From NCBI GenBank assembly GCA_000708835.1, contig DF237129.1, positions 94,907 to 158,906 on the forward strand: a stretch of DNA of 64,000 nucleotides. Reading direction: 5' to 3'. Positions 35,901 to 59,200 of the stretch are shown here, piece after piece. Each line of letters begins with the position of its first letter. Positions within the stretch are counted from its first letter, which is position 1. This DNA is from Klebsormidium nitens. Taxonomy: Eukaryota; Plantae; Klebsormidiophyceae. The translations under genes and the position numbers were made by a program. Under the pieces are notes generated by a model. The model had not been told where the DNA came from. It searched no databases and saw only the letters and a program-made list of their open reading frames with translations.

Positions 35901-38487
35901 AGCAGTCATCGCCCTGCAATGATCAAAAGGTCCTGTTTCAAAGTTGCGTATGCTCATCGTTATCAGTTTTTGGAAGAAAGCACAATTCTACTCACTCATT
36001 GTATACCCTTTCGCACTTTTTGCCAGGGGACAGAGAGGAATCCGATCACTATTCCTCGACTTTTGCAGGGGGAACAAAGACGCATTCCAGACCTGCATTT
36101 TCAACCGAAGGAGCCAACCCCGAGTATGCTTTACGAAATCGTCAGAGACGCAAATATAGCAAATTGTATGCAAAATCGGTGGCCGTACTTCATGTGAGCC
36201 GGATGCTTTGCTTGCACCTGATTCATCATGCGACCTGAGAGTTCTTGATCCCTCTGAAGAGTGATCTTTTCACCTTGTACTTCAGGTCTTGACACAGGAC
36301 GCCGACGACGGAGTGGTAGCCAAAGCTGTTGTCATCCCCAATGATGGTCGTCCCTGGAAGATCTGCCCCCACAATGGCACCGCTGATAGATGAAAAGACG
36401 AATGAATAGTGAGAGGTCGATTTACTAGGTACTCAAATGCATGACGGCATATTTGCTAATCCCCAAAGCAAGACTAAGGAAGGTTACTTTCCATCTAAGT
36501 CCTGCGGCAGAATGCAGATCTTTGCAGCTTTTAGTCAGGCTGTTTGCCATTAATTCAGACAAACGTCTAGTTCAGGGATAATCTGTGTACTTGCATAAAG
36601 ACTCTGGAATCGGTTTTATGTCCATGGTTGATGTCACCAAAGCAGAGCAAATTGCAACGGCAGAAAGCAATTACTTTTGAGGGGCCCCGGCCACATGAAA
36701 AGGGTCAGAGCGGCTTGTCGCATAAACAAGTCGGTAGAATATTATCCCACCTGTGCAAAGTGTTCCGCTTTCCCAGGACTGTATTTCCGGCAACTTGACT
36801 TCCGGGATGCATGACGCAACCTTCCCCTAGGACTGCGCCAGGCCCCACCGTGCAGAGTGGGCCAATCCTGACGCCCTGCGAGTGTTTGGTGATGTCAGCA
36901 CATCATCAAAAGCTTGCTGATGTCAGCAAGCCAGTAGATCTTGGCACTACATGGCAATCTGCAGACTGATACTTACAGCCGCTTACAGAACTTTCCAGAA
37001 TGATACTTCCAACCTGTTTCAGAACAACCTCAGATGTCGGGCAGGAGAAAGAAAGCAACTCTTTCTTTCTTTGGGAGACGATTCGTATACGTCATGAGCA
37101 GGCAGGCAAACTTAGAGCTTTCAAGTTTCTGCTCTGCCTCACCTCCGCAAGTACCGCATCATCATGGACCACGGCTGTGGGGTGTATTGACACCCCCGAT
37201 CGCAACAGATTGACGACCTGACTGCCTGCTCCGTTGTGTGTCACCTCTCTGCTTCTTTGAAGCCATGGCCAGTCGCCCAGGTCTTCGCTCTCCTCTTCTT
37301 TTGGACTCGACCCTGAACAAAACCCCCAGAACAGCTCAAAAATCTAATCTTTTCCATAAACATCCTGGTTCCATCCTTTTCTGAGCAATCATGATTTTGA
37401 GCTTTCTTCACAAGACCGCTGCTAGAGTTCTGCATTCGAGCTGTGCACAATGACACCACAAATTGGTGAAGCTGTGTGATCAGCCAGTGGCTGCCAACCA
37501 AAGTCAAATTGACGGCAGAGTAACCGCAAATCAGGCCAGCATTGAATGGATCTGTGGTGTACCTGCGGCTGATGCTTGAATGGAGCCTCCCCACCTGACT
37601 CCCCGCCCGGACCCCTGAAAGAGGGGCAGAGAAAATGTTGTCGGAATGATGTGCTTCTGTATTCACCAGCTCCAAAAGGGCCATATTGCCCCTCCTTCCA
37701 CTGAGCCATCGATGCGACCAGCCTATTCTGGCTTGGTTTCAAATTGAGAGTGGCAGCGCCAGCATTCTGATCCACCTTTCCATCGCACTTGCGGGACAAA
37801 CAAAGGGCTTTTGTCTCGCATCTCGTTGGGCTGAAATAAGGCGTGATGCTTCACAGTAAGTGATTAGACGTGACACTTCTCTGATGCATTTTGTAACTCA
37901 AGCAGAGTTTTGTCCCTTTTGGTAATCAGTCCTGAAGCTTTCCCTCCTCCTCTTTCACATAATTTCAGACTGACACCAGCATTGTGTTTGGAGCTTATTG
38001 TGGACAATTAAATTGTCTGCAGATCATTTCTAGAGCGCAATTGAAAATATTGTCAAGAACTTACCCAAGCTTTTTGTTTTGCAATCCGCAGCCTCGCTGC
38101 TGTGCATGCCCTCAGCTGTTCAAAGCCAGATTCCTGACTCAGAAACTGTCTCCCTGCCCCAACCGAAGGAGCCAACATGTGGGACTGCGGCAAGGGACCA
38201 CCCCTTTGAAGATACCCTGAACAGACGCACTCAATACCTCCATTCTGCTGGACCTGGCTAGAGCGCCTGCGGTTGAGGCTTGACATCATCCTCGATAGGG
38301 GCTTCCGCAATGAGGGGTGCAGACTTCGGGGGCCTGGGTGAACAGCATTGGTGCTGAGGTTGCTTTCAATGGCAGGCAATCTGGTGTGGCCCGTGATCTG
38401 GTTTCGCTCTGGTCCAGATAGATTGATGGTGCTGGAAAGCATGGCCGCGGTTTGGGACTGACCGATCTTTGCAAGAGATGACGCCAT
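32910..38487 (-). CDS. lpxA: UDP-N-acetylglucosamine O-acyltransferase, plant mitochondrial type
   Basis: Phase-consistent exons give [16 protein letters not shown]|[15 protein letters not shown]|[68 protein letters not shown] and a C-terminal [10 protein letters not shown] typical of plant LpxA. The first exon MASSLAKIG... is my best candidate start. Confidence 0.94.
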
Positions 38488-40155: not shown

Positions 40156-43100
40156 CTACTTCTTGGCGGGCACCAGGGCATACGCGCGCACATAATCCAC
40201 CAGGAACACGTTCATGCTTGGGTCCTTCAGAGAGGCCACGTCAGGCAGGCCGTACTGCTTGAAAACTTCGGTGTCGAAAAACAGGTACGAGGCCTCGGTG
40301 AACGGCGCCTTGGGAGTAATTGTGGCTGCCAGCTGGCCGTCGAAGTAGAACTGCAGCTTTGTGGGGCTCTGCCACCAGAAGCCGTACACGTGGAAGTCGG
40401 AGGTGATCGTACCGGTCGGCAGGCGGTAGAAGTACGGCGTGGTCAGGTCGCCCGTTTGGCTGGGGCCTCTGCCTGTCGGATACTGCAATCGAGGAAAATG
40501 GAAGAGAAGCTCAGGACTGTGAAGGATAACGAAAGCTTTCAGACGATTTTCAAGCAAAGATTGGCATCCAGATTGGCGTCGGCTGGAGAATGGGGGCCTC
40601 AACAGGTAATGAGAAGGAGATGGACGTAAAGGATTGAGGTGAAAGGAGTTCGAAGTGCTTGCGGGAATGTACATGAGGAGAAAGGCCGTTCGTTGGCCTC
40701 GTTCCGCAGAGCACAGGGCCAACGGTGCTTGACTTACTTTTGTGTGCCCTTCGCTCCGCGAAACAGGGCAAGATGTGACGTTAATTAAGCACCTCAAGAT
40801 GGCGCGGAGCAACAACACATGCAGGCATTGGAAAAGAGATGCACACGGCTACGCTTGGATGGCGAGATGAAAACTCAGCGCGTGTGAGAATGACTGTATC
40901 TATCATTCAGTCGCAGAAAAAGTGGTCTTTAGAATGATCATGAGCACAAAAAAAGGAAAGGCAAAACGACTAGTCCTTACGTAGTGCGTGTTGATCGGCA
41001 TGTAGCGGCTGCGGAAGTTGGCTGAATTGCCAATAGTTTCGGTGACGTCAGTCTCGGTGTGCACGGACTGGAACCAGAACGATGACGGCATCAGCAGGTT
41101 GGAGGCCTTCATACGCGTCTCGTAGAAGCCGAGACTGGCGATCGGGCTGTTGCTCGCGAGCGCGGCGGCGCTGATCCACGGGTCGTTGTAGGGGTCAGCC
41201 ACCTGTCGAAAGATCAGGAAACCACGTGGCCCGTGTGTTTGGATGTCAGTTGCGACAAAACGGTTTCAAGTTTCTTCGTGGTCATACTTTGGTCTCTCGA
41301 CCTGCATTTTCCTGGTTCGAATCATCGTTCAATCCACGTAAAACTCTAAGATGCAGGCTGATTTTGGCCCCATTTGTGAATGGATCTCTGATAATGGGTC
41401 TCAAAGCGGCCACGGGGGCGGACGGATTCAAAAGGACTTACGTTTCCGAATGATGAAAGTCAGTCACAATGGATTAGTCCACAGAGAGAGTCGTTTGACG
41501 GCGATCCTTTCGGAGGTCTACGTTCTCTATACGTTTGCTGCTTATTTGAAAATGGATCTTGCTGTCAACAACTGTATTCTTGTTTGACACACGCTACACA
41601 AGGATGTGACGAGGTATAAGGACTGCCTCAGGAGACCTTTCCTTTGCAGATCCTCAAACTCGAAGAACGGCTATTTTCTGCAATTGCCTCCCGATTCCCC
41701 GATCCCCCGATCCCCCGATCCTCCATATCCAGCTCCTTCCCCGTTCTCATTCCACCCCAGAGTTGAAGAGTTCCAACGTCGTTCCGACAGAAACGCAGTG
41801 CCGAACGCAATCGCCCACCTGGTTGACGTTCGTCACAGCCGTCGTTGACGTCAGCCTGGCGTAACCCCCGCCCACCGCCACGTTCGCGGTGCTGTACTGG
41901 CTGGGCAGCCGGCCCGAGTAGTACGGAATGATGGGCTGCCACTTGCTCCGGTCGAGCGAGTCGCCGTTAAACTCGTCGGTTAGAGCCCGGTTAACAACCC
42001 ACCGGTAATCGGCCGGCGGCGGGGGAACGTGCTCCTCGGGAGCCGCAGCGGTCGGGGAGGGGGTGACCGGGGGAGGGTCTGGGTCCGCGCACGTGGCCAG
42101 CGGTCCGTCGTTCGGGCCGCAGCCGCTGGGGCAGCAAGTCATGTTCTGGCCGTCGTAGTTGAAGCACGGGTTGGGCGCCTGAATGGCGCAGACTACAGCG
42201 TCAGGTTCTCAAGAATATTGAGGATTAATGAACACGAGGATATGGCGTGCGCGCATCGGAACCGCCCTAAGTTGGCGGATCGGCAAGAACCTTGGCTATC
42301 CAAAGAATATTGCCGTTGCAAACGGCTGGCTCTAGCTTAGAGCACAACCCACAAGTATCGTGCAATCTGCGTGAGGCAAGGAAGCAACCTGGCGTGCAAC
42401 CGCTTGAGTCCGGGAAGGAAATTATGCAACGTGCAACTTGCAAGAGGTCCTCGAGAGCATGATTCTGGCATTCAAGAGAAGACTGAATTGAACCTAGACA
42501 TCGCGCTCCGATGTGATCAGAGATGAGAAAACGGGACGCTTGAGTTTCGCCTCCAAAACCAAAATCACATGTATCGAAAGCGTGGCCGCTGATCAGCCTG
42601 ATATAAGTCCCCTTCCGACGGCTCTGACCCGCTTTGAAGTCCTGAATAGAGACTGGAGATTTGGAACTCTTTGAGGCTGCCCATCTGATCAGAACAATTC
42701 GAAAAGAAACGAGATGCGAAGGGGTCATCGTAAATCAAGAGCAAAGCAATCTGTTCGTCGTAGTCTGGCTGTTTGTAGTGTAGTCTGTTTGAAGTCTGGT
42801 GACCGAATACAGTTGCGTGAAGCTACAGGAATACCAGGGCAGTCCAAATCTCGACGCCGTGAAAATAGATCGCTCACATCCGTGGTGCACATCTGTGCGC
42901 AAGTCGCGACGGGTCCGACGTTCGTTCCGCAAACGGACTCACAGCACGCCTTGCTGCTCTTGTCAAAACTGCATAGATTCCACCACGCCATCAATAAGTA
43001 CGGGAGATTCACTTCTGAACCAGTCGAAGCGTGCGACTCCTGCAATACGTTCTACACCGGCTGTAGGTAAATTCTTAGCCATGTACTTCTGACGTTGCCC

Positions 43101-44823
43101 TCAAAATGTGACCGTCAGCAAAGCATCGGAAGGTTGGCGGTGACTTGAAGGCAGACCCTGAAGGCAGCTCTTTCGATTCAAACGTGGGCTCTTGCTAGTG
43201 AGGAAAGTATGATATTTTCTAAGCTGACTAGTTTCTAAGTCCGGCCAGATATAAATATAATTGGTCTTCAATGAGAAATAACAAATAAAACCGCGATCGC
43301 TCGCAAGCTTGTAAGAGCTTCTACGAAACCACTCACTTCCAGCAAGGGTTGGAAGCCCAGTCAGGGCAGGGGTCATCCGGAAAGACGACGATCAATTCCC
43401 GTCTGCTTAGGGTGTCCGCACAAAGGAGATGGAACATCAAACTCAGAGGCTAAACGACTCCCTTCGCGAGAATGAAACAGCCGGCAATCTGCTATAAGAA
43501 AATCATGTTCGCTTCTTCTGGTCACCCGGAGTGCCTAGTATCTGCTCCTCGGATGTCGATAAATGCAGTCAACAAACAGATACGGTGTCAAGGAAGGAGG
43601 CCAATAAAGGTCTCCACATGAGCCCTTCTTCTGAGGAATTCAATGAGATTTTCGGAAGACCGACGTGCCTGAGCATCTGGCAGATGTACGATCAGGATCC
43701 ATTTTCTTCCTGAATTCTCTTGAAGTCCAATTAGTTCAATTTGTTGATCCATACCCAGTGCAGATAACCCACCTGGGAAGACGCTAATCTCCTCAAGGTA
43801 GACACAATATCCTTCCTCCGATCCATATAAGGCGATCTCGAGGGTCTCGGTCGATGTATGGGCGACAAATCGACCAACGTTAGCGGTATCGTTATCCACC
43901 GCCGATGCGAAGATGGGGACTGACTCGACCGACAGGACAAGATCGACCGGCTTGTCCGTCTTCAAACGGAGTGAAAAGACGTAGGCGGTGCCTGGCACAA
44001 GCAGGGGAGACATGAAACATTCGGAGTATGCAAAGAATGCTGGTTGGGCTCTTTCTGTAGCCAGTGGTCAGCATCCGAAGCTCCAAGGCTCAGAACGCCT
44101 TTTCAGGTCGGTTGCTGCTAATATCAAGCGCGGGGACGAAAATTGTATACGTACACTTCTTTTCAAAGCAGTAGCCACGGCAGCTATCCACAATTTGTAT
44201 TTTTACGTTGATTCTATTAGCTTAGTTGAAGAGACCCGTGCCCAGGCTTTCCTTTGTAAGAGTTTGACGCTATCTGGCAACAGCTCTCCTTTTTAAACCA
44301 AGATTTTCTCGCAGTGTCCATTTTCCCAAAAAGACTCCAAGGATCAGGAACTTCAAAAAGGCTTCTTGCAGTTGCGCATCTAAAAAGGTAAACCGGGAGA
44401 GAGAGCACTGTAAGGTTATGCTAGAGGTAAAGCCTTTCACGAAAAGGCAGGTATGAATGGAATCCGCACAGGGCTTTCCTAATGACACCACCACAAGAGT
44501 TAGACTAGAATCTATTGCAACCAAAATATCGATACGATTCCTTTCGCTCTCAAACTTATCGGCAGAGTACCTGGGGTCAAGCAGGCGAAGGCTCCCCTCA
44601 GTTTGGCCCCTTCTTTTCCCAGCTCCACCTTCACAGACCCCGCACTCAACTGAGGGGATCCCTCTGGAACCGACACGATTCGCCCCTCAAAAGCAGTCCA
44701 CTCTCCAATCAGGCGCGCTTCGCCCGGAAAGCTAGGACCATCCTTTTCAGAGCTGCCGTTGACAAGAAATGCGTAAAGAAGGGCGACCAAGAAGGTAAGA
44801 CGAAATCGGCGATAGGTCGCCAT
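40156..44823 (-). CDS. Secreted GH16 glycoside hydrolase A (beta-porphyranase/agarase-like) with a CBM-like domain and two Cys-rich modules
   Basis: Exons are 44823-44571 (signal peptide), 43991-43773 (PGTAYVFSLRLK, CBM-like), 43402-43337, 42968-42878, 42178-41819, 41202-40981 and 40482-40156. Motifs include DEFNGDSLDRSKW, GFYETRMKAS, SSFWF, catalytic ETDVTE, DFHVYGFWW and VDYVRAY. The join from 43773 to 43402 is off by one phase, so a small exon is missing or the 5' part is a separate gene. Confidence 0.8.
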
Positions 44824-46702
44824 ATCGGCTCGATTCGCTAGGTAGGGGAGTCAAGGTGGCTCGTTTAAGGCAAGAACGGGTCGGAATCGAAGCTTCGGCG
44901 CGCCTTTCTGTGCTAAAGAGAATCTGTTGCGCCCACGTGTTTGTATCCGAATAGAAGAGTCCTATCTGAAGCCATCTGAGCTTTGCCTGGAAGACTTCTG
45001 CTCAGCCTCGGAGGCACGGTCTGCGCCCCAACGCGCTTCGTACTGGAGTACTGTTGTCCTAATTAGCATCTTCAGGAGCTCGAGGCATTGGTTGCGCCAG
45101 CTGTGAGGCACTTGCTGGCTGTACGGTCTCGATAGTGTTGCAAGGCAGTTGTAAAGTTCGGCGCGGCCTCGAAAAGGGGGCGACACTTCAGTGATGGTTT
45201 CGAAATGCTCCTGTCGCTCGAACAGTCCGATACTCATCGAGACGGTCCTGGGACGTGCCAGCAGGCTTCGAGCTAGTTTTGACGTACACACCCAGCCTGA
45301 AAACACAAAATTTGCAAAGAAGATGGAGACAGAAGATTCCCATTAAGAAAGTGGTCGGACTGATCGACAAGCAGGAATTGTTCTTGTCGCAAATGGTGAT
45401 GCGGGAATGATGGAGGGCGCTCCATATGCTGCACATATACTGCTGACGGTGCAAACACAAGGCAACTGTTTGTCAGACTATCCAAGCGACTCTCGCGGTT
45501 TTATGAATTTAGATTCGCACTTTCTCAAGGAGCTCTCGGGCCGGAGTAGTTCAAGGAAAAGAGATTGATTCGACTTACCAAAAAGAAAGCCAGGACCGCG
45601 TCTCGAACGACGATTGATGCTACGCTTGACCTCAAACCATGCTCATTGCTGTGCTCGAGCCTAAAGGCAAACGGGAACGCTGCAGAAAGGCCTCATCAGT
45701 CTTGTTAGCGAAAGCTCACGCTTTGCATGAAGAAATCTGCACTCTGACAGAGGCCACTCTGGAAATCCAACCTGTCCGACTAATTGCAAGTTGCACCCAA
45801 GACGATGCTCAGAGCAGACTTTATCATGTCCGGACCTCGTCATGTCCTGCTTTATCATACAAACAGCTCGTCATCAAGTTGTTCCATCATGTGACCGTTA
45901 CCGCGACGCTACTCTGCCCATGTCTGCATGATGCAGTTTCTTCAAGTTGCAAGAGGATGCCTTTTGGGTTCCTCTAAGTATGTCAGTGCTTTGGAAGGAG
46001 AGAAACTCTGTCAAAGGAATTCATGCAGTTTTTCTCGTTACGAACCATACATCCGCCCACGTTTCGTTCGACCCTCGCCACAGACATCAAAGCTGCGGTT
46101 CGCGCGCCGCCTTCTTAAGCAGACGTAACCGCTGATTAAATTGAACTCGTGCCCGACGAAACAATAGTGATTACACTGGATGAATGGTGTGCCCCTTAAT
46201 GTCCTCAGAGCTCACAGCCGATCCTAAGTATCTTCCCTCTTACTTCTTAGCTATCTTCTAAGGTAATGTTCGAGATGAGGGGTTCGCTAGGGGCAACAAA
46301 CACATTGGTTTGCTAGAAGAACAAAGGTTCATCATACTGAATGAAGGTTTTACTGCCGACTGGCGGTACTCCCTGTTATAAGCTACCCGATCCTACTTCA
46401 TTGTGTGAATATGCTTACGAGCGAGCAGACTGTGGGTCGCCGCTTCCTATCATTGCTCGCAAAGAATGGTCGTATCTTTGATCATAATATTCCCAGCAGG
46501 AAAGCCTTCTACGAGTGGTTAACCTATCATAGGGACTCCGTTTTGGCGTGCGAAATTTGCAACGCCGGAGCACTGCTTCGTGACCAATTAATATTCTTAG
46601 TACGAAATGAATGTCTGCCTTCGCGGGTATCTTTATATTGACTCCTAAGCTATGATACACGATTCACTGGCCCAGTGAACGTATCTTCCACTCGTTCCCA
46701 TC

Positions 46703-49700
46703 TCATTTTCCGTTTGGAACCAGGTAAAACGCGCGCACGTAGTCGATCAGGAAGACGTTTTTGCTCGGGTCTTTGAGATCGGCCACACTGGGCAGTCCGT
46801 ACTGACTGAAAACTTCGGTGTCGAAGAACAGGTACTGCGACTCGGTGAAAGGCCCCGCCGGAGTGATCGTGGTTGCCAGCTGTCCGTCGAAGTAGAAGTG
46901 CAGCGTTTGGGCGTCCTGCCACCAGAGGCCGTACGTATGGAAGTCGCCGGAAGTGAGCACGCCGTCCGGCAGCCGGTAGAAGAACGGCGTGGACTGGTCG
47001 GGAGCTTCGCTGACGCCGTTCGGGTACTGCCGGGGTGGAAGCAGGAAGGAAAAAGAGCTTAGCTATTTTAGTACCGAGAGAAGCGCGTGCTTTGAACGAA
47101 TAGAAGTATGTGAGACTGGGCTCGCTGGTGGTTTGAATGGCGCTTCGCAGAATTTGGCGGAGACACTGGAGCCGTTGAAAGTGCGAGAAAGTGGACAAGC
47201 ACAAGCAATCAGAAGCGGTTAATTGGAAAGACAGGCGTCTCTATGTAGAGTCCACGTAGTTGTAGGAACCAAGTCCAGAAGCAAATATGGACCTTCTTTA
47301 CGAATAGATCAAAGCTAGAGGCTTCAAGTGCCTTGCGTCAAAAGCAAGCTTCTATGTTTCAATTCGGCCTTTTCCGATCTTGCCTTTCCGGCCTTCCCCG
47401 ATCGCTGATGGTTATTTACCAAAAGCACCATCTTTAATGTCGCAGCTCGAGTTGAGAGACGTTGTGCAATTCAGGGAACATGAAGCTAACACATTCAGCG
47501 TTCCGGATTAAAGTTCAGAAAAGGACGAAGAGGAATTGGACAAAGTCGGTCTCACGTAGTGCGTATTGATCGGCATGTAGCGGCTGCGGAAGTTGTTCGG
47601 GTCGCCGATCGTTTCAATGACGTCAGTTTCGGTGTGCTGCGACTGGAACCAGAAGGATGACGTCATCAGGATGTCGGAGGCCTTCATCCGCGCCTCGTAG
47701 TACCCCAGGCCCGCGTACGCGCCGGTGCTCGCGAGCGCGGCCGCGCTGATCCACGGGTCGCTGAACGGGTTTGCCACCTGACAAAAGGTTGTCTTGTTTG
47801 GTACGGTTCTGTACACTCGTCTGCATATCTAAGTGGAGAAAGCCTGGCAGATTAACGTCCTGAGTTTCATAGAACGTCATGATTTTCAAAGGTGCAGATT
47901 CGATCATTGTCAGTTGTAGTGCTTGCTGCAACTCGATGATCGCCTGACCACCCAATTTAGGAGGCTTCACAGAACAGATCAATGGATGGTCTCCGAAGGG
48001 CACTGAGTCATCTTCTCCAAGGTTGCCGTCAAACGAAGTGAAAAAGCGAGCGTTTTTGAAGTCTGGCTCTTTTTCTCGGACTGCCCATGGCTTCTCATTC
48101 CAGCTTGCCATGACAGAGAGCCTGAGAATGCATCGCCCACCTGGCTGACGTCGTTCACGGCCGTCGTTGACGTCAGCCTGGCGTACCCGCCACCCACCGC
48201 CACGTTCGCGGTGCTGTACTGGCTGGGCAGCCGGCCCGAGTAGTACGGAATGATGGGCTGCCACTTGCTCCGGTCGAGCGAGTCGCCGTTAAACTCGTCG
48301 CTAAGCCCCGGGTTAGCGACCCACTGGTAACCAGCAGGGGCCGGGGGGAGGTTCGTACCGGGGGGGGTGACCGGGGGAGAAGTGGCCGGGGGGGAAGTCT
48401 CCGGGGGAGAGGTAACCGGAGGAGAAGTAACCGGGGGAGCGGTTTCCGGGGAGGATGTAACCGGGGGAGAGGTAAGCGGGGGGGATGTCTCCGGGGGGGA
48501 GGTTTGCTGGGGGGGAGTGACCGGGGGAGACGTTGCCGGGGGGGAGGTTTCAGGGGCAGAAGTGACCGGTGGAGCAGGAGTGGTCGCGGGGGATCCCGCG
48601 CAGGTAGCCAATGGGCCCCCGTTCGGCCCGCAGCTGCCGGGGCAGCAGATCATGTTCTGTCCGTTCCAGTTGAAGCAAGGATTGGGAGCCTGCAGAGAGA
48701 ACGTAGAGAGGGTTAACGAACGGGTTTCCGTGTTCATGATTCTCTTCGTTGTTGAATCCCGATACGTGCTTCAATACTTGAAGAGAAATGCGGTGGACTC
48801 GGCACGTGAAAGAGTCAGCGGTCAGCAGGATTCGGATGCCGAAAAAATGGAAAGCAGCCGTTCAGTGATGCTTGTACCAATGCTCAATTTGATGATCAGT
48901 GCCCCCACTTTTACGCGGAATCAGGTGCACAAATGCTTCGAAATCTGAGGAACGAAGTGCCGTCTCAAGAAAACCAACACGACTTCCGCATCTTCAGACG
49001 TGTGCCCAGCGACCTTGGATGCGGCGCAGTCACACAGTAAAACTTGGGAAAAAGACGTCGCAAATGGCTCCGCACTTAGAGGCGCAGCACGAAGCAGAAG
49101 CACAAACGTTATAAAATCTGAATGAAGCCGCGAGGTTCAGTGCGGGCACTCGCCTCGGAGGTGCATCCTCCAGTGCAACTCGCCATAGGACCCGTGTTGA
49201 TTCCGCACCCGTCGGGGCAGCAAGCCTTGCTGGAACCGTCCCAGCTGCACGGAACAAGAACAAAAAGAGGGTAGGAAATTGCATCCCAGAACCTGCCAGA
49301 AATGGGTATTCTATGCTGAACACTGCAGGAACGCGAATAACGTCTTGAGATCAGTCTCGGACTCCAAACTCAAGAAAGCATCCGTCATATGCATGGTAAG
49401 GAATTGAAGGGAGTTCTTGTCACGACCGGCCGCAAGTCCGGCGTGTGCGTACATCACCAAAGCTTCTTCATACCGAAATATCAGCGAGCACTAACCAGCA
49501 GCCCACAAAGTTTAAAACTCTCAAATTCAGCCTGATGTATCATGCCATACGCAAGAGCCCTGGTTGAGAGCATATGCAGGGATGTCCTTACTTGTAGCAG
49601 GGATTGGGAGCCGTCGAAGGGCAGGCGTCCCCAAGGGCTACGGAGATCACCTCTCGCCTGGTCAAGGCTTCTGCTGGAAGTTTGTTGGAGTTGGAAGGAG

Positions 49701-51178
49701 AAACTGCAGGAGACGTCTTGCGACTTTAGGAAACCGAATGCTACTCTTCGTGAGGAAGTTCGAACAGAAAATCTACCGGGGCGGTTGATAGAAATGTGCT
49801 CAGATTCGCAAAATATGGGATGATTTCCTTGGAGGGGCCCAGGAAACTTCGTACAGAAGAAGCACTTTAAGGCCACAAGAGATACATTGGAACGAGGATA
49901 AGACGAAGGATTGGGAGTTTGAAGAGTATATGTCTTGCAGAACAATGGCGCCGAACCAGAGAGAAGAGAACAGAAGTCCAAATGACCTGAGTGGTGTTGA
50001 TGCATTCTGCTTATCTTCTCTGCTCTTAGGCTTTTCCAGCATGGGACTTTCCTCAGATCTGGCGGCAATAACGCGAACGTATAGCGACTTTTTGATCGAC
50101 ATTTTTTATCAGGTCCTTGTTCTGATTCAACGAATACAAGCTTCTTCGATCCGAGAAGAAAGACGACACGAGATCTGAGCGGTGAATAGCATCATCCAAA
50201 TAATGAGTTACGGCTGCCCATAACCCACCTGGAGTGATTGTGACGTCATCAGGGTATGCCTCCGCTGCTTTTCCCTTGCCAAAAAGAGAAACCGCGAGCG
50301 TCCCGCTGCTTTCAGCCGCTATGAAGTAGCCGACCTTGACCCTCCCGTCATCCACGGTCGATGTCATGATTGCGGTCGCGCCACTGGAGAAGACTAGGGC
50401 GACCGACGTGCTGACGTCACCCTTCATTTGGAAGGACAGTCTGTAGGCGTTACCTGGGGAAAGGAAAGATGACAATGTCAATGTAAGAAGAGAGAGTCCA
50501 ACAAGAGGGGTGGCTTGGAACAGGCATGTTGGAGGTCGGGAATGCAGTTCGCGTAATCCGTTCTTCATACCCCTTCTCCCGATGGCTGCCATAACCAGAC
50601 TTCACTCTTTATCGCGCCAGGATCGTGCTTATCATACAAAATTACTGTTTCCTGAATGGTTGACAGCGGAACTGGATAATGACGCTCTCTTGCGCGTGGA
50701 AGAAGGTAAAACGCAGGCAAATTGCAGGTACGTCCAACATCGTCGGGCGCAAACTTTTTATATTGACGAAATGTATCCGGTGAGCTTTTCGTGCTCCAGC
50801 TAGGGCAGCCAACAGATGTTCTCTTCTTTGATCGCGCCTAATACACACAAGCTTTGCGCTTCAAAGGTGGGTTTCACAAATTGATAACCCGAGCACAACC
50901 CTCGACAGGTTTTAATGAAAGTATAGCTTCTTCTTGCTTCATTATCCTGACGTACCTGGAACGAAGCCAGTGACATTTCGTTGCAGCACGGCGCCTCTTC
51001 CCCCTAGGTGCGCCGATCCGCCGGGCGCCGAAAAGCTCCTCCCCGGGAACGCCCTCCACTCTCCAACCAGGCTCACTTCGCCCGGAACACTGTTGCTGAT
51101 CTCGCCAGCAATAAGAGCAACCTGGAGAGTCAGAAAGGCAACCGAGAGCGCTGTTGGGAGGTGGGGAGTGGTCGCCAT
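46703..51178 (-). CDS. Secreted GH16 glycoside hydrolase B, tandem paralogue with a long Pro/Thr linker
   Basis: Exons are 51178-50956 (signal peptide), 50453-50229 (CBM-like), 49657-49592, 49244-49154 (GC donor), 48689-48141, 47777-47556 and 47026-46703. Motifs include catalytic ETDVIE, GYYEARMKAS, DFHTYGLWW and YLFFDTEVF. Intron positions and phases match paralogue A, including the same unresolved join. Confidence 0.82.
48355..48595 (-). repeat. Coding repeat with a 15-nt period, (xTSPP)n linker
   Basis: It translates as PPVTSAPETSPPATSPPVTPPQQTSPPETSPPLTSPPVTSSPETAPPVTSPPVTSPPETSPPATSPPVTPP. Confidence 0.9.
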
Positions 51179-53251
51179 GACAGGCTGAGAAGGGATAATA
51201 GTAGGCTTTCCAACAAGGGAGTCTTCGAAAGGGAGAGGCCGCGAGTGAAGCGTCTGTGCTCTGTCATTTGTGCATCTGCTGCTCGTTCTTTACCTAAGTA
51301 ATCAAGAGGCAGCTTTGCTAATTCAATGCTTCGCCTTCAGTTCGTCAGACTAGCTTGTAATTAGAGTCTTCAAAGCCTCACGCTCTGGACACGCATCTCC
51401 CTCACCTTGCATACGCGATTCGTGCTCAAGCCTCTCCTGTGTGAAGACCTTCCCTTACGACACGAAGAGTGCGCCTAGAGTGTTCTCATTACAGAATTCG
51501 CTTAATTCCGAATAATTCGAGGACGCATGTAGCGCGTTTTGAGGTGGGTTTGCTTCGAACCGTTTGCAAACAGTTGATATGGAGTTGAGTTCATTCAGGC
51601 TTCGAACTCCCGTTGCCTCCACTAAGTGCGGCCGTAGTGGTCTGTCAAGCGGGATTTGATATGCGCCACGCATCGAAGTGTTCGTGCTCCAGTTATAGAG
51701 GGCGGTTTCAACCGCTACTTGGGGCCTTCAAACGTGGGCGATTGATGGTCCAGAATTGGGACTGCCCTGTACCGATTCCTCGGGCGGTACGTTGGGCAGG
51801 GATCCGCTTCCAAGTGTCAACACCGGGACTCCGCCAGAAGCTACCCACGGGGCTCGAAGCGGAAGCTCGGAAGATCACATCTAAACTTCCAACTGAAAGT
51901 ATATTTGGGTCTTAGGATCTATCGGCACTTCGTGCTATAGATTCTCTTTGGCGTGTTCTGTCCTCAAAAGCTCGGAACATTCTTGAAACTGCGTTGGCGT
52001 GTACTGTCCTCGAAAGATCAGACTATTCTGTGGATGACATTGCGCCCTGTTCGGGGCATATGCAAGGCGGTGCTAATTCGGTGCACTTTTTGACTTGCAG
52101 AACGGGCGAACGCGCGCTTCGAGACGACCACTACCCGGCTTCGTCTTTGTGAGTAACTGACACATGAAGTCGATCTGGGTCAATCAGCTCATTAAAAAGC
52201 CAGCTTCGTCATTTTCGATGTAAAGAGCCAAGCGGGGGTTGGTTGAGATTGTCGACAAACTAAACGCGGTGCTATGTGTTTGAAGATGCATTCCTCTTCT
52301 CTTCCCAAACTCTTTCTAACCTGCCGGTAATAATACCCACATTCAGCTCGTTCAAAGCCCTTTTTACCGCTCACTGTCACTTCGTACTTTGAGCAAAACA
52401 CAGCGAGCAGGATAATTACACAAGAAAGATTAAAGTAAGCCAAGCTGATAATGGCTCCAACTGGCACGGAAAACCCTAACCCGATCAGGAACCTGCTCTG
52501 CACTCTTACCCACCTAGCTAAGCCCTGAATTAACCCCACCCGTCGGTGCGGTTTCCTTATTTTATCATCTAGGTTTACTATTATCTTTCTTGACTTTGAT
52601 TGCTGGAGGGCATTGGCCACGCTACAGGTGTAATTGAGGAACACCGTGACAATTTCAACATGGATGTGGAAACACACAAACAATCTCGACCCCATTCCGA
52701 TTCAGACTTTTACCATAACGAGGCCGAGCTGACACGATTTCAAGTAACCGAGCTTGACGCAATCTGTTTTCGTATCGAGGCTCACTATAAACCACGTTCC
52801 ATCTTGAGACCGTCACTAGATAAATGGCGCTTCGGTTTTCTGCAGCCCTTGTGGCTTTTTACTTGTCACAAGGATCCATTCTCGATATCGAGCGATCCGA
52901 TGCCCCCTCCCTGACGTCTATGCCATGTGGATTAGCAAGTCAGAGTAAAAGCTTTGTCGACCAGTCAACCCGCCTGAACGAGTGGCTCCTATGAAGACGA
53001 CCGAACTCCTGCAAGGAGATTAAGTATACGTAGCGATGGTAGAAGATTCTTCCTGTGCTATAAATCAACACGAAAGGGGCGGCTCATGAACACAAGTTGA
53101 AAAGCGTCTCCTTCTCTGGATCAGGATCTTGTCACCTTTTGTCTTCTCTAGCTTCCCATAACATTCGTCAGTTCCTCGTGCAACCTCGGGCTGTTAGAAG
53201 CAGTCTGGCTGCGGCCCTCACCTTTTAGCTTGCACCGGCTGAAGAACGCAA

Positions 53252-56200
53252 ATGGCGCGCGCAACTTCTCTGCCGTCCATTCTGGTGCTGGCTGTGCTGC
53301 TGACGGCTTCCACGGTGAGTGCGCGCGCACGCGCGCTTTTTTTCCAAGCGCGCGTAATTGGCGCGGCAGGTTCTCGGATGCACCCCCTCTCGATTTGCTG
53401 CAGCTAGCCGTCAAATTCAGCGCTTCTCTAAACGGAGATTCGCGGTTCTACATGCCATTCTCATTGTCAGGAAGTTTCAGGAAAGGACAGGAGTTTGGAC
53501 GCGGCCTCTCCTCATGCCGTCTCCTGCCAGGAGAGGTTCCCTGGAACGGACCTCAGTCCAGCAATTCGCGACGTTGATTCATCTCACTCGTGATATTTCT
53601 CGTGCTAACTTTTCTCCAATTCAGTATCAATTCTGATTTAAATGTAGATCTGAGGCTGGTCTCAATCATGTCCTGGGTTTAGCGCATGGTTCCATCTCAT
53701 TTGGAAGTCCGCTTTCTAAGGTTCTTCGTGTCTCCATTGAGCTAAAGCAACCCTACCTGTTTTCCGCAGGGGCTCGTGTACTCTACACCAAATGGAAAGG
53801 GGGCGAAACATGGGGAAACAGGTAAGCCAGAACTTTAGAAAAACTCCCCAAACAGCCCCGTTTTCTCTGTATGGTTGCCTTGTAACGGCCTCAATCAAAG
53901 AAGTTGCGCCATACGTGCTGATCTATTAAGCTATTACGCTGTTTTCTCCATTCTGTATCTCTTCAATACTCTGGTGAAACAGAGCGCGTCTCTTTGAATC
54001 TTTAAGCGCTCTCGCAAACCTTCAACTCACAGTCCAGAACCGCTCAACCGCTAGACCGTGTATACGCTGACATGTCAGCTCTCACACGATTGAATGCGAC
54101 TTCTGGCGGGACGTCATTGACCGAGACGGGTTTTCGATAGCGTCATATGTCGATTTGCAATCCTGATTCAGGATCCGTTGCTTGATTTACCGAAAAAGAT
54201 ACAAAAAGCATCGTTTCCCCTCTGTACTTCTCTAGGCAGCCCCGCACGAGCGCCGGGCCCTTCGACTTCGAGGACCCGTATACCCGCCCCCGCCCCCGCC
54301 CCGGGCCCTCAGCCTGCCTCACCGCCCACAAATTCTGCACCTTCTGTGTCTCCCGGTTCTCACTCCCGGGCACCAGTGGCTCCAACCCCCAGCACCGTTG
54401 CGCCCGGTCCGATCGACCCATCAAACGATGTGCCGATCAGCAACGAAGTAAGAGGTGAGAGACCTGATCGAGATGCTTGGACTCTCTGGCTTTCTCGCGT
54501 TCTCTTCGCACGGACGCTTGTCGTCCGCCTCGTGATCTTTTGCGTGCGGGTTCAACGCTGGCCATAACGAAAGCCGTAAAGACTGCTCCTGGACCACTAA
54601 AAGGTCTACACATGTCGGGATATCTACAAATAAGATTGACAAATACCCCGCGCGCAAAAAGACCTATCCAACATTCGCGCCGCAACCCCCCTACCGCAGC
54701 TCTTTTCATCGGCCCCGGCCTAGTCGACTTCATCGACCCCCCCCCCAAGAGCAGCTTCATCGCACCCCCCTCAACGACCGCAACCAGCGCCACCGACCCT
54801 GTCAGCGCCATCGGGTTCTGGCAACAGCCGCTCGCGTTTCCGGAGCGGATCACAACTTTCGACAGCCGCACCTTCAAGCAGACAATCTTCAACGTCACCC
54901 TGGGCGAGTTTGAAGTCATTGGGGTACGCACTTCCGCACTGCCAGCTATTCTGCAAAGAAGCTCGTGACGAAGAATAGCTTCTCTGGTCAGGAGCTTCGT
55001 TTCATTCTTTCTATAAACATTATGCCGATCACAAGTGTTTTCAAAGACTCGTAAGCGAAGCTGAGCACAAGTTCCAGAACGAATCTGGCATCAAGCTCAC
55101 GTCAGAAAAAACAGTGATCAGCTGCAGGGCTGCACTTTTCTCTACCTCCGATGTCTTTTCGCTGACCCCGCTTCAACTCCTGAGGCGCTCTTGCTTTGGA
55201 AAACCCTAGCATCGATGCATTCGAGACTGTTTACTGTTCCGCATGGATCTTGATACGTCTTCTAATTTCCACAGACGCTGCATCCCGCGATCGCAAACAG
55301 TACCGCCTTGCTGGCGTACGGTCGGTCCGCCACGACCGCCAACCTCCCCGGGCCCACGTTCGAAGTCCTTCAGGGGCAGCCACTCTTCGTCACGGTCGTC
55401 AACAAGCTCCCGGGGAATAACACCGGCTCGCTTGCCAACGCGATCGACTACACGCTAACCTTCCTGCCACCGCCCCCAGTAAGCTCCGTCTCTCGGGCGC
55501 GCGCGTGCGCGCTTTTGACAGATATTAGCTTCCTTGCTTACCGAGAGATCAGAGAATCCTGGTCCGACTAGGGTTTTCTCTCAAGTACGTGAAGTGTACC
55601 CCTTCTTGAGAAAGTTGCGGCTAGACTTCCCTCGAGATGTCCTCGATCCGCTGAGTGCGTAGGCTCAGACAAAATGTTTTACCAATTATTAGGATGCGCC
55701 GGGCTGGGCACGTGACCTGAATCAACAGCCATTCTTGCGAGCGCTCCGTTCAACAGGCTGTTTCGAATCCGTGCTGAGACTAGACACATTCGCTTCCCGT
55801 GACGACTCCGAGAGACCAACTTTCACGCGCCTTCTCTCGCTAAACCTTCTCCACGTCATCAGACTCTGGAACCCCAGAACCCGAAAATCCTAAACTAGAA
55901 GCCTGAAACCCTGAAACCCTGAAACCCAAAACTCTCCCAGGGCAAGGGCGTCTTCACCAGCGTTCACCTCCACGGCGGTATCCAGGAGCCGCAAAGCGAC
56001 GGCAATCCCGACGTCTGGTTCACCAACCCCGATCTCTGCGACTACAGCACAGAAACGTGTGTGGGGCCGCTGTTTAATGTCTCCAACAAGTACCTGGACC
56101 CCCCCGGCCAGAAGACGCACTTCTACCCCAACATAAACCCCGCGACGCTGCTCTTTTACCACGACCACGGTGCGTTCCCTCTGCAAACCCGGTGCGCCGT

Positions 56201-59200
56201 CAACTGTTTAGTAGAATCCGTCTAAATGTCCCTTATTCCTAAGTTCTGTCTGATTCATCTCGGACGTCCGAAATCGGCCAGAACGAGAGTTTCCCGGACC
56301 GAGTACCTCCGCAACGCGTCCGGCCGCGCACACTCTGAAGGAGCTCTCTTGAGTGTTTATTGTCTCACGATTTTTCTCGAATTCTTCTGTCTTTCAAGAG
56401 AGTCGTCTTTTCTTACGAACACAAGTCAAAAAGCGCTTGCACATTGGAGGTTTGGCCTCAAAAATGATTAATGTGACCTGCGCACGCGTTTGCAGCTTTT
56501 GGCGTAACCCGGCTGAACGTTTACAACGGGCTTCTCGGGCATTACATCGTCCGCTCGCAGTGGGAGCTCCAGAACCCCGCGCTGCCAAAGGGCAAATATG
56601 AACGGGAGATGGCGATCGTGGTAAGTGCGCACCCGACAACGAGAAATATTAGAAATGTAAGAACCTATTTGGATCCCTTCGGGCAAACTAGCTCGCGCTG
56701 CCGGACGACCGTTGAAAACAATTTTCTTGCTGTTTTTCTGCCTCAGTTCCTGTCCATCCGATCGCTGCCCCCCGAATCCGCTCAGCTGTATCAATCCATC
56801 CTGCGGGGCTCCGCTCAATTCATTGCGCCGAAATCGGCTCACATTGCGTCGATCTGTTTCTCATAAAGCCGCCTGGCAGACCCATTCCTCCATTCCGCCG
56901 GAATCCGCTTGCAGGACGTGCTGCTCAACCCGGACGGCTCGCTCGACTACCCCACCATGGGAGTCACGCCGTTCCACCCCAAGTGGGTCCCCGAGACCTT
57001 CGGTACTTTCATGACCGTCAACGGCAAGATCTGGCCCTTCTTTGAAGTGGAGCGCACGACGTACCGCTTCAGGATCGTCAACGGCTGCCAGGCGCGCTTC
57101 CTCAACCTGCGCCTAGTGGACCCCCAAAGCACAGGCGAGCGGATTGGTCAATACCCACTTCTTGTGTCGCTGTCCTGCCTTCCATCTGGAATGGTGAAAT
57201 TGAAGCTTCGTGTTCCGGAATCAGGGTTGTGTTCACAGGCAACATCAGTGTTAGGATGGTTCTCCACTTCGATTTCGAATTTTAATCAGCTCCAACGACC
57301 CGAGATTTAGAACCCTGACTCCCGTTGGCTTTTCTACTTCGTTGCAGGCAATACGAGCGTCCTCCCCTTCGTCCAAATCGGCGCGGAGCAGGGCTTCCTC
57401 CCCGCGCCCGCGGTTTTGGACACCATCCTGATGGGCAACGCGGAGCGCGCGGACGTCCTCATCGACTTCTCGCGCATGCCCGTCGGCGCCGAGATCATCA
57501 TGAGCAACGACGCGGCCGCGCCGTTCCCGGACGGCCCCGCGCCCGTCTTCGGCGTGAACGGCACCGCGTCCGTGCTCAAGTTCATCGTCGTCGCGCACGA
57601 CGCGCGCGCGGGGCCGACGCGCGGCGTGCCCGACCGCCGCGCCGTTGGCAAGTTCGTCCCCCCCGCCGCCATGGCGGCCGCGCCCCCGGTGACGAAGACG
57701 CGGCCGCTGCTGCTGCTTGAGAATCTGACCCCGAGCGGAGCTACGATTCAGTTGACTCTCAATGGGCTGCCTTATAGGAGCCCGCTGACCGGCGCGCCGA
57801 TTGTAACCGAGCTGCCGGCTCAGGGCACGACGGAGCTGTGGGAGATGTTCAACCCGACAGCGGATTCGTGAGTGGTTGGTTTTTCTTTCCCAAGAGATTT
57901 GACTCGTGAGAGCGGCTCATTTATGAACGTTTGCGAAAGAGGAGAGCTAGGAAGCTTCAGTGGGTTCATGTCCCATGGCGTATCTTAGATCCCCATCCCT
58001 TGATTAGGTCAAATACTTCTCTCGAATACTGGTTCAGCCTGCTTCTCTATCAAAAGGCTAGCCTCACTGTGGGTTTTTTTCCCCATGCTTTCCTGGGCTG
58101 CTTTTCCAGGCATACGGCAAAGTAAGATCATTGATTATAGGTGACGTTTACAGCTCCGTCGTTTTGATGAGACCAAGCGCGGGACAGAACGCAGTCTTTG
58201 TCAAAGCTGTTGGTCTCCTAAGGCTTTCGAGCATCGTCGCAAATTCATGCAGGGGTCGTCATCTTTGAGGGATGCCTCTTTCACCCCTTCAAAGACAAAG
58301 AGGTTCACAGCTAGATTCCTCCTTTCCGCCTATATACAAACCGTCTCTGCTGGGTCCACTCACATTTGGTCGAATGTTAAAAGACTTGATATCTCATGTT
58401 CGGCACAATCATATGCTAATTGCCTTTTCCATACCCAAAACATTGCATAATACCACAAAATTGACTTTCTCCTTCCCCAGGCATCCCATCCACACCCACT
58501 TGGTCGGCTTCCAAGTGCTCAACCGCCAGCCGTACAACACAACTTCCCCCCCCACCAGCCCCGTGTTCACCGGCCCCCCCGAGCCCCCCGCGCCCAACGA
58601 AACGGGGATGAAGGATACGGTGAAGGTTCCCCCGGGCTTCGTCACTCGGATCCTCATCACGTTCGCCCGCCCGGGGTGGATCCCCGGGCAGGGGCCGCCC
58701 TTCCCTTTCGACCCCACGCCCCAGCCAGGCTACGTGTGGCACTGCCACATTCTCAGTGAGTCGTCAGAGTCTGCGCCTTCTGGTTTCCGAGTGATAAACA
58801 GAAAGCGGACGGATTTGACAGATGAGCAAGCTTGATGCAGAGAATAGCATGAGTCCTGCAAGCGCACAGACTCGTATGCAGTACGCTGGAGAGAAGCACG
58901 GATCAGTCCGTCCAGTTTTAGCCTTCAAAATCAATTGCCTGATGACGTCGCGATGAGCTCGTGTATAAGCCGCGCTTGCATAAAAAAACTCGGCTTGACG
59001 TGTTTGCACTTGCCGTCTCAAAACATGGTCTGCGTTCTTTGAGGTGTTCTATTTGCGCTCCTACATTGCTGCCGTCTGTGCGACGGTTTGGTCAACCTCC
59101 ATCGAGGGTAAGTAACGACAATTTGGGTTAATCGTGCTTCTTTTTTCGTGCAGACCATGAGGACAACGACATGATGCGCCCCTACTTCCTGATCGACCCC

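Follow-up and report, generated by a model that had tools for sequence, protein, structure and literature searches.

Tandem PorA-type GH16 genes of probable bacterial origin in the streptophyte alga Klebsormidium nitens

The stretch of Klebsormidium nitens DNA analysed here (the window, 64,000 nucleotides) is the last 64 kb of scaffold DF237129.1 (assembly GCA_000708835.1); a coordinate in the record equals the window coordinate plus 94,906. It holds a tandem pair of genes on the minus strand, gene A (40156-44823) and gene B (46703-51178), which encode proteins with a glycoside hydrolase family 16 (GH16) domain. We put the probability at roughly 70% that these are paralogues of a PorA-type GH16 gene of bacterial origin, captured in the ancestry of Klebsormidium, that introns, modules and a duplication came later, and that the products are secreted enzymes acting on galactan. 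GenBank names the two annotated GH16 proteins, P0003 from gene A and P0001 from gene B, merely 'Concanavalin A-like lectin/glucanase'.

What would such a capture mean? Klebsormidium is a key model for the adaptation of green-algal walls to land, and horizontal gene transfer (HGT) of wall-active enzymes, with the step from ExoK to EG16/XTH as an example, is a recurring theme there. If the 'seaweed galactanase' branch had separately supplied a second GH16, experimenters would have a clear and tractable system in which an enzyme that bacteria use for degradation has become a modular protein secreted by an alga. There is also a value for annotation, in that the vague lectin/glucanase labels and a split model of gene B can be corrected. 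The ecological side result, a PorA-type clade that is common among non-marine bacteria of many phyla, may outweigh the main finding in importance.

The GH16 domain and its bacterial relatives

The domain matches Pfam PF00722 (Glyco_hydro_16) with 40.2 bits against a cut-off of 22, which, like the PorA match given below, lies well outside what chance would produce, and the two paralogues are 76% identical across it. Their catalytic motifs are the following.

41055-41038, minus strand: gene A catalytic motif ETDVTE (ExDxxE), P0003 residues 332-337, aligned with SEIDVIE of PorA
47630-47613, minus strand: gene B catalytic motif ETDVIE, P0001 residues 249-254

The E/D/E triad is invariant across the family alignment. 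The N-terminal DEF..LD..KW element is conserved, and both proteins also contain SDEFNGDSLDRSKW, GRLPS, M(T/P)SSFW, MPINTH and DFH(T/V)YG(L/F)WW. The best solved match in a PDB search is Zobellia PorA (4ATE/3ILF), with an E value of 1e-48 over residues 3-244 of 247, ahead of BpGH16B (GH16_12, 7e-34), PorB (GH16_11, 9e-20), agarases (4e-14 to 5e-4) and a lichenase-type beta-glucanase (4e-5); the top matches, setting aside three chains named only 'GH16', are porphyranases and agarases. NCBIfam gave ExoK at E 0.05 (P0001), BglS at 8e-5 and a kappa-carrageenase model, all far below the model cut-offs, and the DEIDFEFLG-type motif of XTH/EG16 (GH16_20) is absent from both genes. Judged from sequence, the GH16 domain is of PorA type, on the beta-agarase/beta-porphyranase branch and not that of XTH/EG16 or laminarinase. 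End-to-end alignment to solved GH16 structures predicts a beta-jelly-roll fold for it. Linking to the PorA group in a sequence-similarity network is set at E 1e-55, and the value found here, 1e-48, came from a PDB-sized search. An earlier note on this DNA had described two paralogues with ExDxxE and the accompanying motifs, every one of which is where it had been read, and had placed the motif set in the bacterial porphyranase/agarase branch rather than with plant XTH, in agreement with the PDB ranking and the ExoK value; as the nearest enzyme, PorB, its example, has to give way to PorA.

Relatives were sought by a word search of 5.8 billion proteins and an exhaustive search of 1.84 billion representatives. 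Among the matches listed in the word search, the only eukaryotic ones are the two K. nitens proteins; the other 118 are proteins from metagenomes or metagenome-assembled genomes (MAGs), 215-625 aa long, 41-53% identical and mostly single-domain. The exhaustive search returned 996 matches, with 85 clusters at E<=1e-30. Twenty listed clusters were looked up and, besides exon-sized algal fragments, they were metagenomic and intronless or, in one case, a marine Aquimarina protein. Among the matches listed, the full-length relatives that come closest (45-53% identity) are bacterial, lack introns and are mostly non-marine.

A scan of GTDB genomes added at least 80 named bacterial loci. The nearest (44-51%) belong to MAGs of Chloroflexales, Bacteroidota, Verrucomicrobiota/Akkermansiaceae, Phycisphaerae/Tepidisphaerales, Abditibacteriaceae and Armatimonadota, which, to judge by the names of the isolates, come from peat (SPRUCE), glacier-fed streams (GFS), Danish soils (MFD) and lakes; the nearest group also includes the cyanobacterium Mastigocoleus, and Planctomycetota are among the loci too. 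Marine Flavobacteriaceae (Tenacibaculum, Aquimarina, Seonamhaeicola) stand at 42-43% and Phocaeicola plebeius at 34%. Non-marine MAGs of at least eight phyla commonly carry a PorA-type GH16 gene (loci L001-L033), and the mixing of phyla across the tree suggests that bacteria have often passed the gene to one another. The genes next to the bacterial GH16 include a galactokinase and a sugar transporter in a Verrucomicrobiota locus (L005), an S1 sulfatase, a second GH16 and a major facilitator superfamily (MFS) transporter in a Bacteroidota locus (L002), and a GH95 in another (L012). These neighbourhoods, heterogeneous as they are, point to galactose-containing, sometimes sulfated substrates.

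Four short 'proteins' at 63-67% identity in the exhaustive search are exon-sized open reading frames on eukaryotic contigs. One, P0197 (Logan SRR23617307, locus L083), comes from a second Klebsormidium assembly, where the gene A orthologue, its exons 88-95% identical, is syntenic together with its downstream neighbour, a conserved hexapeptide-repeat transferase. The other three (P0169, P0267, P0268) lie on JGI contigs of 61.5 kb and 257 kb (L081 and L082; GC 50%; samples 3300060284/5) of a second alga, whose gene has a signal exon, an N-domain, two Cys modules and GH16, as in K. nitens. An intron right after INTHY is common to both species, and the one that precedes the catalytic exon differs in position; the flanks of L081/L082 show no synteny with the window. 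The synonymous distance (dS 0.72) suggests that the second alga is a fairly close relative.

In a careful maximum-likelihood tree of 65 rows (LG+C20+F+G4), with GH16_12-like bacterial rows such as P. plebeius as the outgroup and the second alga entered as two separate exon fragments, the algal rows form one clade (100/99). That clade falls inside a 55-row PorA-type clade (100/100), together with the PorA-like marker P0122d1 and without the GH16_12-like rows. A marine PorA-proper subclade (100/98), marked by domain 1 of P0122, contains no algal rows. Since bacterial lineages lie on both sides of the algal clade, the direction of transfer would have been from bacteria to alga. Within the algal clade the two K. 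nitens genes pair with each other (99/88), and the second alga stands outside the pair. The transfer would be older than K. nitens, since orthologues are also present in two other algal assemblies; by the sequences at hand it took place before these algae diverged, and the gene duplicated after the line of the second alga had branched off.

A history consistent with these results would run as follows. An ancestor of Klebsormidium took the catalytic domain of a PorA-type GH16 from a bacterium; the captured gene then would have gained spliceosomal introns inside the alga, and would now also carry a signal peptide, a CBM-like domain (CBM, carbohydrate-binding module), one or two Cys modules and a Pro-rich linker; duplication would have come after the Klebsormidium lineages began to diverge. 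The acquisition, the gain of introns and the duplication the earlier note had foreseen. It had proposed horizontal acquisition, in keeping with the intronless bacterial or metagenomic nature of the close full-length relatives listed and with the nested position of the algal clade, and had named a phylogeny as the check, with a eukaryotic GH16 clade as the contrary outcome; the algal rows fell inside the bacterial PorA-type clade. Intron gain agrees with the GT-AG introns and the one position common to the second alga, and duplication after acquisition with the pairing of A and B. Its comparison with Bacteroidetes enzymes has to be widened, the nearest bacterial relatives being mostly non-marine and of many phyla.

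Gene models and protein architecture

P0003 and P0001 can both be rebuilt exactly from the window sequence with GT-AG introns only. The models, annotated and proposed, are as follows.

40156-44823, minus strand: gene A, GenBank protein P0003 (464 aa), from tblastn and the NCBI gene call on DF237129.1
44823-44571, 43991-43773, 42192-41819, 41202-40981, 40482-40156, minus strand: annotated coding exons of gene A, exact rebuild
42856-42968, minus strand: candidate extra exon of gene A, unannotated, with the first Cys-rich module CSFDKSSKACCESVCGTNVGPVATC, conserved in gene B and the second alga
46703-51178, minus strand: gene B, probably one gene, in two GenBank models
48737-48141, 47777-47556, 47026-46703, minus strand: exons of P0001 (380 aa), exact rebuild
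51178-49109, minus strand: upstream GenBank model in gene B (231 aa), annotated as a separate gene
51178-50956, 50453-50225, 49244-49154, 48689-48141, 47777-47556, 47026-46703, minus strand: proposed fused exons of gene B, from frame-compatible splice sites and homology to gene A and the second alga
53252-58737, plus strand: flanking gene, multicopper oxidase (Cu-oxidase_2, 751 aa)
36703-38487, minus strand: flanking gene, hexapeptide-repeat/GMPPB-like transferase

The annotated start of P0001 is an internal Met. Upstream of it, exons 51178-50956 (with an ATG at 51178) and 50453-50225 are homologous to the N-terminal exons of gene A, and the Cys-module exon near 49244 stands 3' of them. The fused model requires a GC-AG intron at its third junction (49154|48689). 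In gene A the candidate exon can be spliced in frame from a donor at 43769 (GTTATC) to an acceptor (TGCAG) that sets the exon start at 42968, in contexts that parallel those of gene B; its 3' end is uncertain (42901, 42889, 42874 or 42856). Because of the homologous upstream exons, the parallel splice sites and the doubled module in the second alga, gene B is probably a single gene wrongly split into two annotated models, and we infer one further exon beyond annotation in both genes. Four introns are annotated in gene A, and each gene probably has five; the label 'intron-rich', given when the genes were first noticed, is apt only in a relative sense.

The similarity of A and B is confined to exons, and their introns are unalignable. 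In the first GH16 exon they reach 90% identity (41810-42025 and 48132-48347), over a stretch that runs about 9 nt into the intron, compared with 78-82% for the other exons; local gene conversion may account for it.

In domain order both predicted proteins have a signal peptide, a CBM-like beta-sandwich, one or more small Cys modules, a Pro-rich linker and GH16. The elements that precede the catalytic domain lie at these positions.

44748-44571, 43991-43773, minus strand: gene A N-terminal CBM-like domain, P0003 residues about 26-157, equivalent of the gene B domain
50225-51097 (exons 51097-50956, 50453-50225), minus strand: gene B N-terminal CBM-like domain, from Atlas searches, AF2 and Foldseek
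about 49244-49154, minus strand: gene B first Cys-module exon, from homology
48600-48689, minus strand: gene B second Cys-rich module APNPCFNWNGQNMICCPGSCGPNGGPLATC, from sequence, no Pfam family
42178-42089, minus strand: gene A equivalent Cys-rich module APNPCFNYDGQNMTCCPSGCGPNDGPLATC, from sequence
48333-48596, minus strand: gene B Ser/Thr/Pro-rich linker, about 88 aa, (S/T)PP-type repeats, extensin-like
42085-42011, minus strand: gene A short Pro-rich linker, a shorter version of that in gene B

Read by eye, the N-termini MATYRRFRLTFLVALLYAFLVNG... and MATTPHLPTALSVAFLTLQVALIAG... look like signal peptides, from which we infer that both proteins are secreted. The N-domain, about 130 aa in gene A, led to CBM_4_9 clusters in an ESM Atlas feature search (0.95) and to galactose-binding-like domains in the structure search (TM 0.69-0.76). 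An AF2 model built from an exon-wise alignment of four copies reached a pLDDT of 72; a single-sequence model, with a pLDDT of only 54, was dropped in its favour. Beta-sandwich CBMs dominate the Foldseek matches at TM 0.5-0.56 (8XMZ, CBM36, 16, 4, 6, 22 and 61), the first of them, 8XMZ, being a porphyran-binding CBM. As modelled, the domain has a CBM-like fold, and its ligand cannot be read from the fold because the matches to the CBM families are nearly tied. There is no Pfam match to the domain. An hhalign comparison with bacterial CBM_4_9 was co-linear and not significant (E 0.0026; exon-wise 0.18; probability <=11%), phmmer found no match among all fetched bacterial relatives, and a word search with P0003 residues 25-200 returned P0003 itself as the sole match. 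Some of those bacterial relatives (P0037, P0063, P0068, P0089) do have an N-terminal CBM_4_9 ahead of GH16.

The Cys module follows the pattern (N)PC(Y/F)N(W/F/Y)(N/D)G-x3-CC-x3-CG-x4-(G/N)P-x-A(T/S)C, with two copies per gene, and stands twice in tandem in the second alga too (L081:5697-5987, L082:6936-7243). It has no Pfam family match, and nothing alike turned up elsewhere. The gene B linker has a weak Pfam Extensin_1 match (E 3e-6, below cut-off).

Other architectures occur among the bacterial-type proteins. P0122 (847 aa) and P0123 (722 aa), both metagenomic, have two tandem GH16 domains each, the first PorA-like and the second from another subclade, and at least one of the two proteins has a Bacteroidota-style C-terminal tail. 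A Chloroflexales protein (L001:2392-3729) begins with a ricin-type beta-trefoil lectin, and one from Phycisphaerae (L008:1660-3732) with DUF5077 and DUF3472.

Probable activity and competing explanations

GH16 enzymes are retaining endo-glycanases or transglycosylases. Each algal protein would be a secreted retaining endo-glycanase, possibly a transglycosylase, in which the first Glu of ExDxxE would act as the nucleophile and the last as the acid/base. The bond it cuts would be a beta-galactosidic one, in a galactan outside the cell to which the CBM-like domain would direct it, and that galactan could belong to the alga's own wall or mucilage, or to the polymers of biofilm partners. A CBM-targeted, secreted endo-galactanase or transglycosylase, catalytically active and with a galactan as its substrate, is the most likely function.

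The cleft can be compared with that of PorA (numbered as the 3ILF chain index plus 9). R59, S129, W131 and the catalytic triad are kept in the algal proteins. The algae and all of the non-marine bacterial relatives have Gln in place of Arg133, in a loop shortened by one residue, and the FWFRVG motif is confined to the marine PorA-proper subclade. The algae also have Ile for His53 and Tyr for Trp56, where non-marine bacteria mostly retain both PorA residues. R133 and H53 presumably help to hold the 6-sulfate of L-galactose at subsite -2 in PorA. Because these two positions differ, the label 'porphyranase' cannot be transferred to the algal proteins, and it was fitting that the substrate had been left open when the genes were first noticed. 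Residues equivalent to W56 and R59 line the cleft, and PorA strictly needs L-galactose-6-sulfate (L6S) at -2 (PMC9771727).

Several points weigh against a bacterial gene captured and put to use as a secreted galactan-acting enzyme. An AU (approximately unbiased) test does not reject the algal clade as sister to PorA-proper (p-AU 0.33), and the base of the PorA-type clade is a polytomy from which no donor lineage is singled out. A quick tree put the algal clade outside the bacterial rows, as the sister of them all, so that the nesting depends on rooting with the GH16_12-like sequences. Among the matches listed in both searches, no eukaryote appeared beyond Klebsormidium-like contigs, an absence bounded by the databases and by a listing of the best 150. 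Secretion was judged by eye from the N-terminus. The cleft changes specific to the algae (Ile for H53, Tyr for W56, and SQHT ahead of the nucleophile) may have changed or lowered the activity, and the exopolysaccharide (EPS) biosynthesis genes beside one bacterial relative (L013) hint that its substrate is something else than an algal galactan. No listed sequencing run contained the stretch, and four sets of putative RNA contigs gave no match to 46600-51300, which is not evidence of silence.

Could the proteins simply be true beta-porphyranases or agarases, with PorA-like specificity for a backbone with L-galactose-6-sulfate, acting on red-algal-type galactans of neighbours or of the alga itself? 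PorA is the nearest characterised enzyme and much of its cleft is retained, the first fold match of the N-domain binds porphyran, one close bacterial relative adjoins a sulfatase, and a red alga without porphyran also makes a porphyranase (PMC9771727). Yet Arg133, His53 and Trp56 are replaced and the loop is shorter, the algal clade lies outside the marine PorA-proper subclade, and the N-domain fits other CBM families almost as well. K. nitens and most of its bacterial kin are, moreover, terrestrial or freshwater, where porphyran is not known. We consider this specificity unlikely; classical porphyran is probably not the substrate, and classical porphyran or agar together make up a minority possibility.

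Less likely still, the genes could be relics or encode non-catalytic, lectin-like proteins, intact in appearance and unexpressed or inactive. The RNA contig sets and the algal-specific substitutions near the cleft would fit this, as would the only moderate constraint between the paralogues, for which the ratio of nonsynonymous to synonymous change (dN/dS) is 0.40 (dS 0.39). Gene A and its L083 orthologue, on the other hand, give 0.18 (dS 0.29), and gene B and the second alga 0.37 (dS 0.72); selection on both genes is purifying. Unbroken reading frames occur in three assemblies, the E/D/E triad does not vary, and architecture and splice sites are conserved across species, all contrary to decay.

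Vertical inheritance from an ancient eukaryotic GH16, or a transfer from alga to bacteria, is very improbable. The algal clade does branch near the base of the PorA-type clade and the donor is not pinned, but the outgroup (GH16_12-like) and the sister lineages are both bacterial and come from at least 10 phyla, and Klebsormidium-like fragments are the only eukaryotic matches listed in the two large searches. PorA was placed by Viborg et al. (2019) in a small unclassified group beside GH16_11 and GH16_12, both described as exclusively bacterial (PMC6827312), and the streptophyte XTH/EG16 lineage belongs elsewhere within GH16 (PMC8711696). Contaminating bacterial DNA or a fault of assembly, suggested by nothing except the bacterial nature of the nearest kin, is effectively refuted by the multiple GT-AG introns, a GC content in line with that of the neighbourhood, eukaryotic flanking genes and a locus that is syntenic in an independent assembly.

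With bacterial capture retained as the preferred account, the polymer itself can be considered. The PorA-type clade is common in non-marine bacteria of many phyla, and an unrecognised terrestrial or freshwater galactan substrate is therefore implied. One tentative extension, which we regard as rather doubtful, is that the clade, rather than being in essence a marine family for red seaweeds, is widespread in fresh water and on land and acts in nature on an undescribed galactan, possibly sulfated or containing L-galactose, of streptophyte algae such as Klebsormidium or their biofilm partners, and that Klebsormidium domesticated the enzyme, with targeting modules added, in order to remodel this polymer in its wall or mucilage, for instance when filaments fragment or are rewetted. 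The algal enzymes, the CBM-like domain and the bacterial loci with galactokinase, sulfatase and GH95 are handles for finding such a non-marine galactan.

Comparison with known systems

A full-text literature search found no paper describing PorA-type GH16 genes in a streptophyte alga. The Penium genome preprint comes closest to the subject: K. nitens was searched by BLAST with queries that included porphyranases, and 12 K. nitens GH16 were analysed, six of them EG16-2 homologues. A later subfamily, GH16_26, is cited among the porphyranase/agarase neighbours and may be the one to which PorA now belongs.

With Zobellia galactanivorans PorA the algal proteins share the LSDEFNG..LD..KW element typical of the agarase/porphyranase/carrageenase branch, together with ExDxxE, R59, S129, W131, NTHY, FHxYGxWW and FDTEVF; identity to marine PorA-type relatives (P0122 domain 1 and the Flavobacteriaceae loci) is about 41-43%. 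Unlike PorA, they are encoded by eukaryotic genes with introns and carry a CBM-like N-domain, Cys modules and a Pro-rich linker. The non-marine bacterial PorA-type GH16 (L001, L002, L005) are alike in the FWFQ loop, with Gln for Arg133, and some have CBM_4_9 before GH16, which is the algal domain order. They differ in being intronless and mostly single-domain, some with tails of the type IX secretion system (T9SS).

Transfer of galactanase-type GH16 into algae is already known from red algae, and the PorA-type genes of a streptophyte alga, present in GenBank, would be a further case. The red-algal genes are a precedent for a bacterial galactanase-type gene gained by HGT and then duplicated (PMC9771727). 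Chondrus crispus CcGH16-3 is a beta-porphyranase (Manat et al. 2022, PMC9771727) and acts on a polysaccharide that its alga is not known to make. Unlike the Klebsormidium genes, the red-algal ones are kin of GH16_13/GH16_14 and belong to marine Rhodophyta; given the different GH16 types and hosts, the two acquisitions would be independent. Klebsormidium itself offers the other parallel. The streptophyte EG16-2/XTH lineage (GH16_20) has been proposed to derive from alphaproteobacterial ExoK (Shinohara and Nishitani 2021, PMC8711696), so that there too a Klebsormidium GH16 is ascribed to bacterial HGT and linked to wall remodelling. Unlike the pair described here, EG16-2 and XTH belong to the lichenase/ExoK-like branch, with its DEIDFEFLG-type motif.

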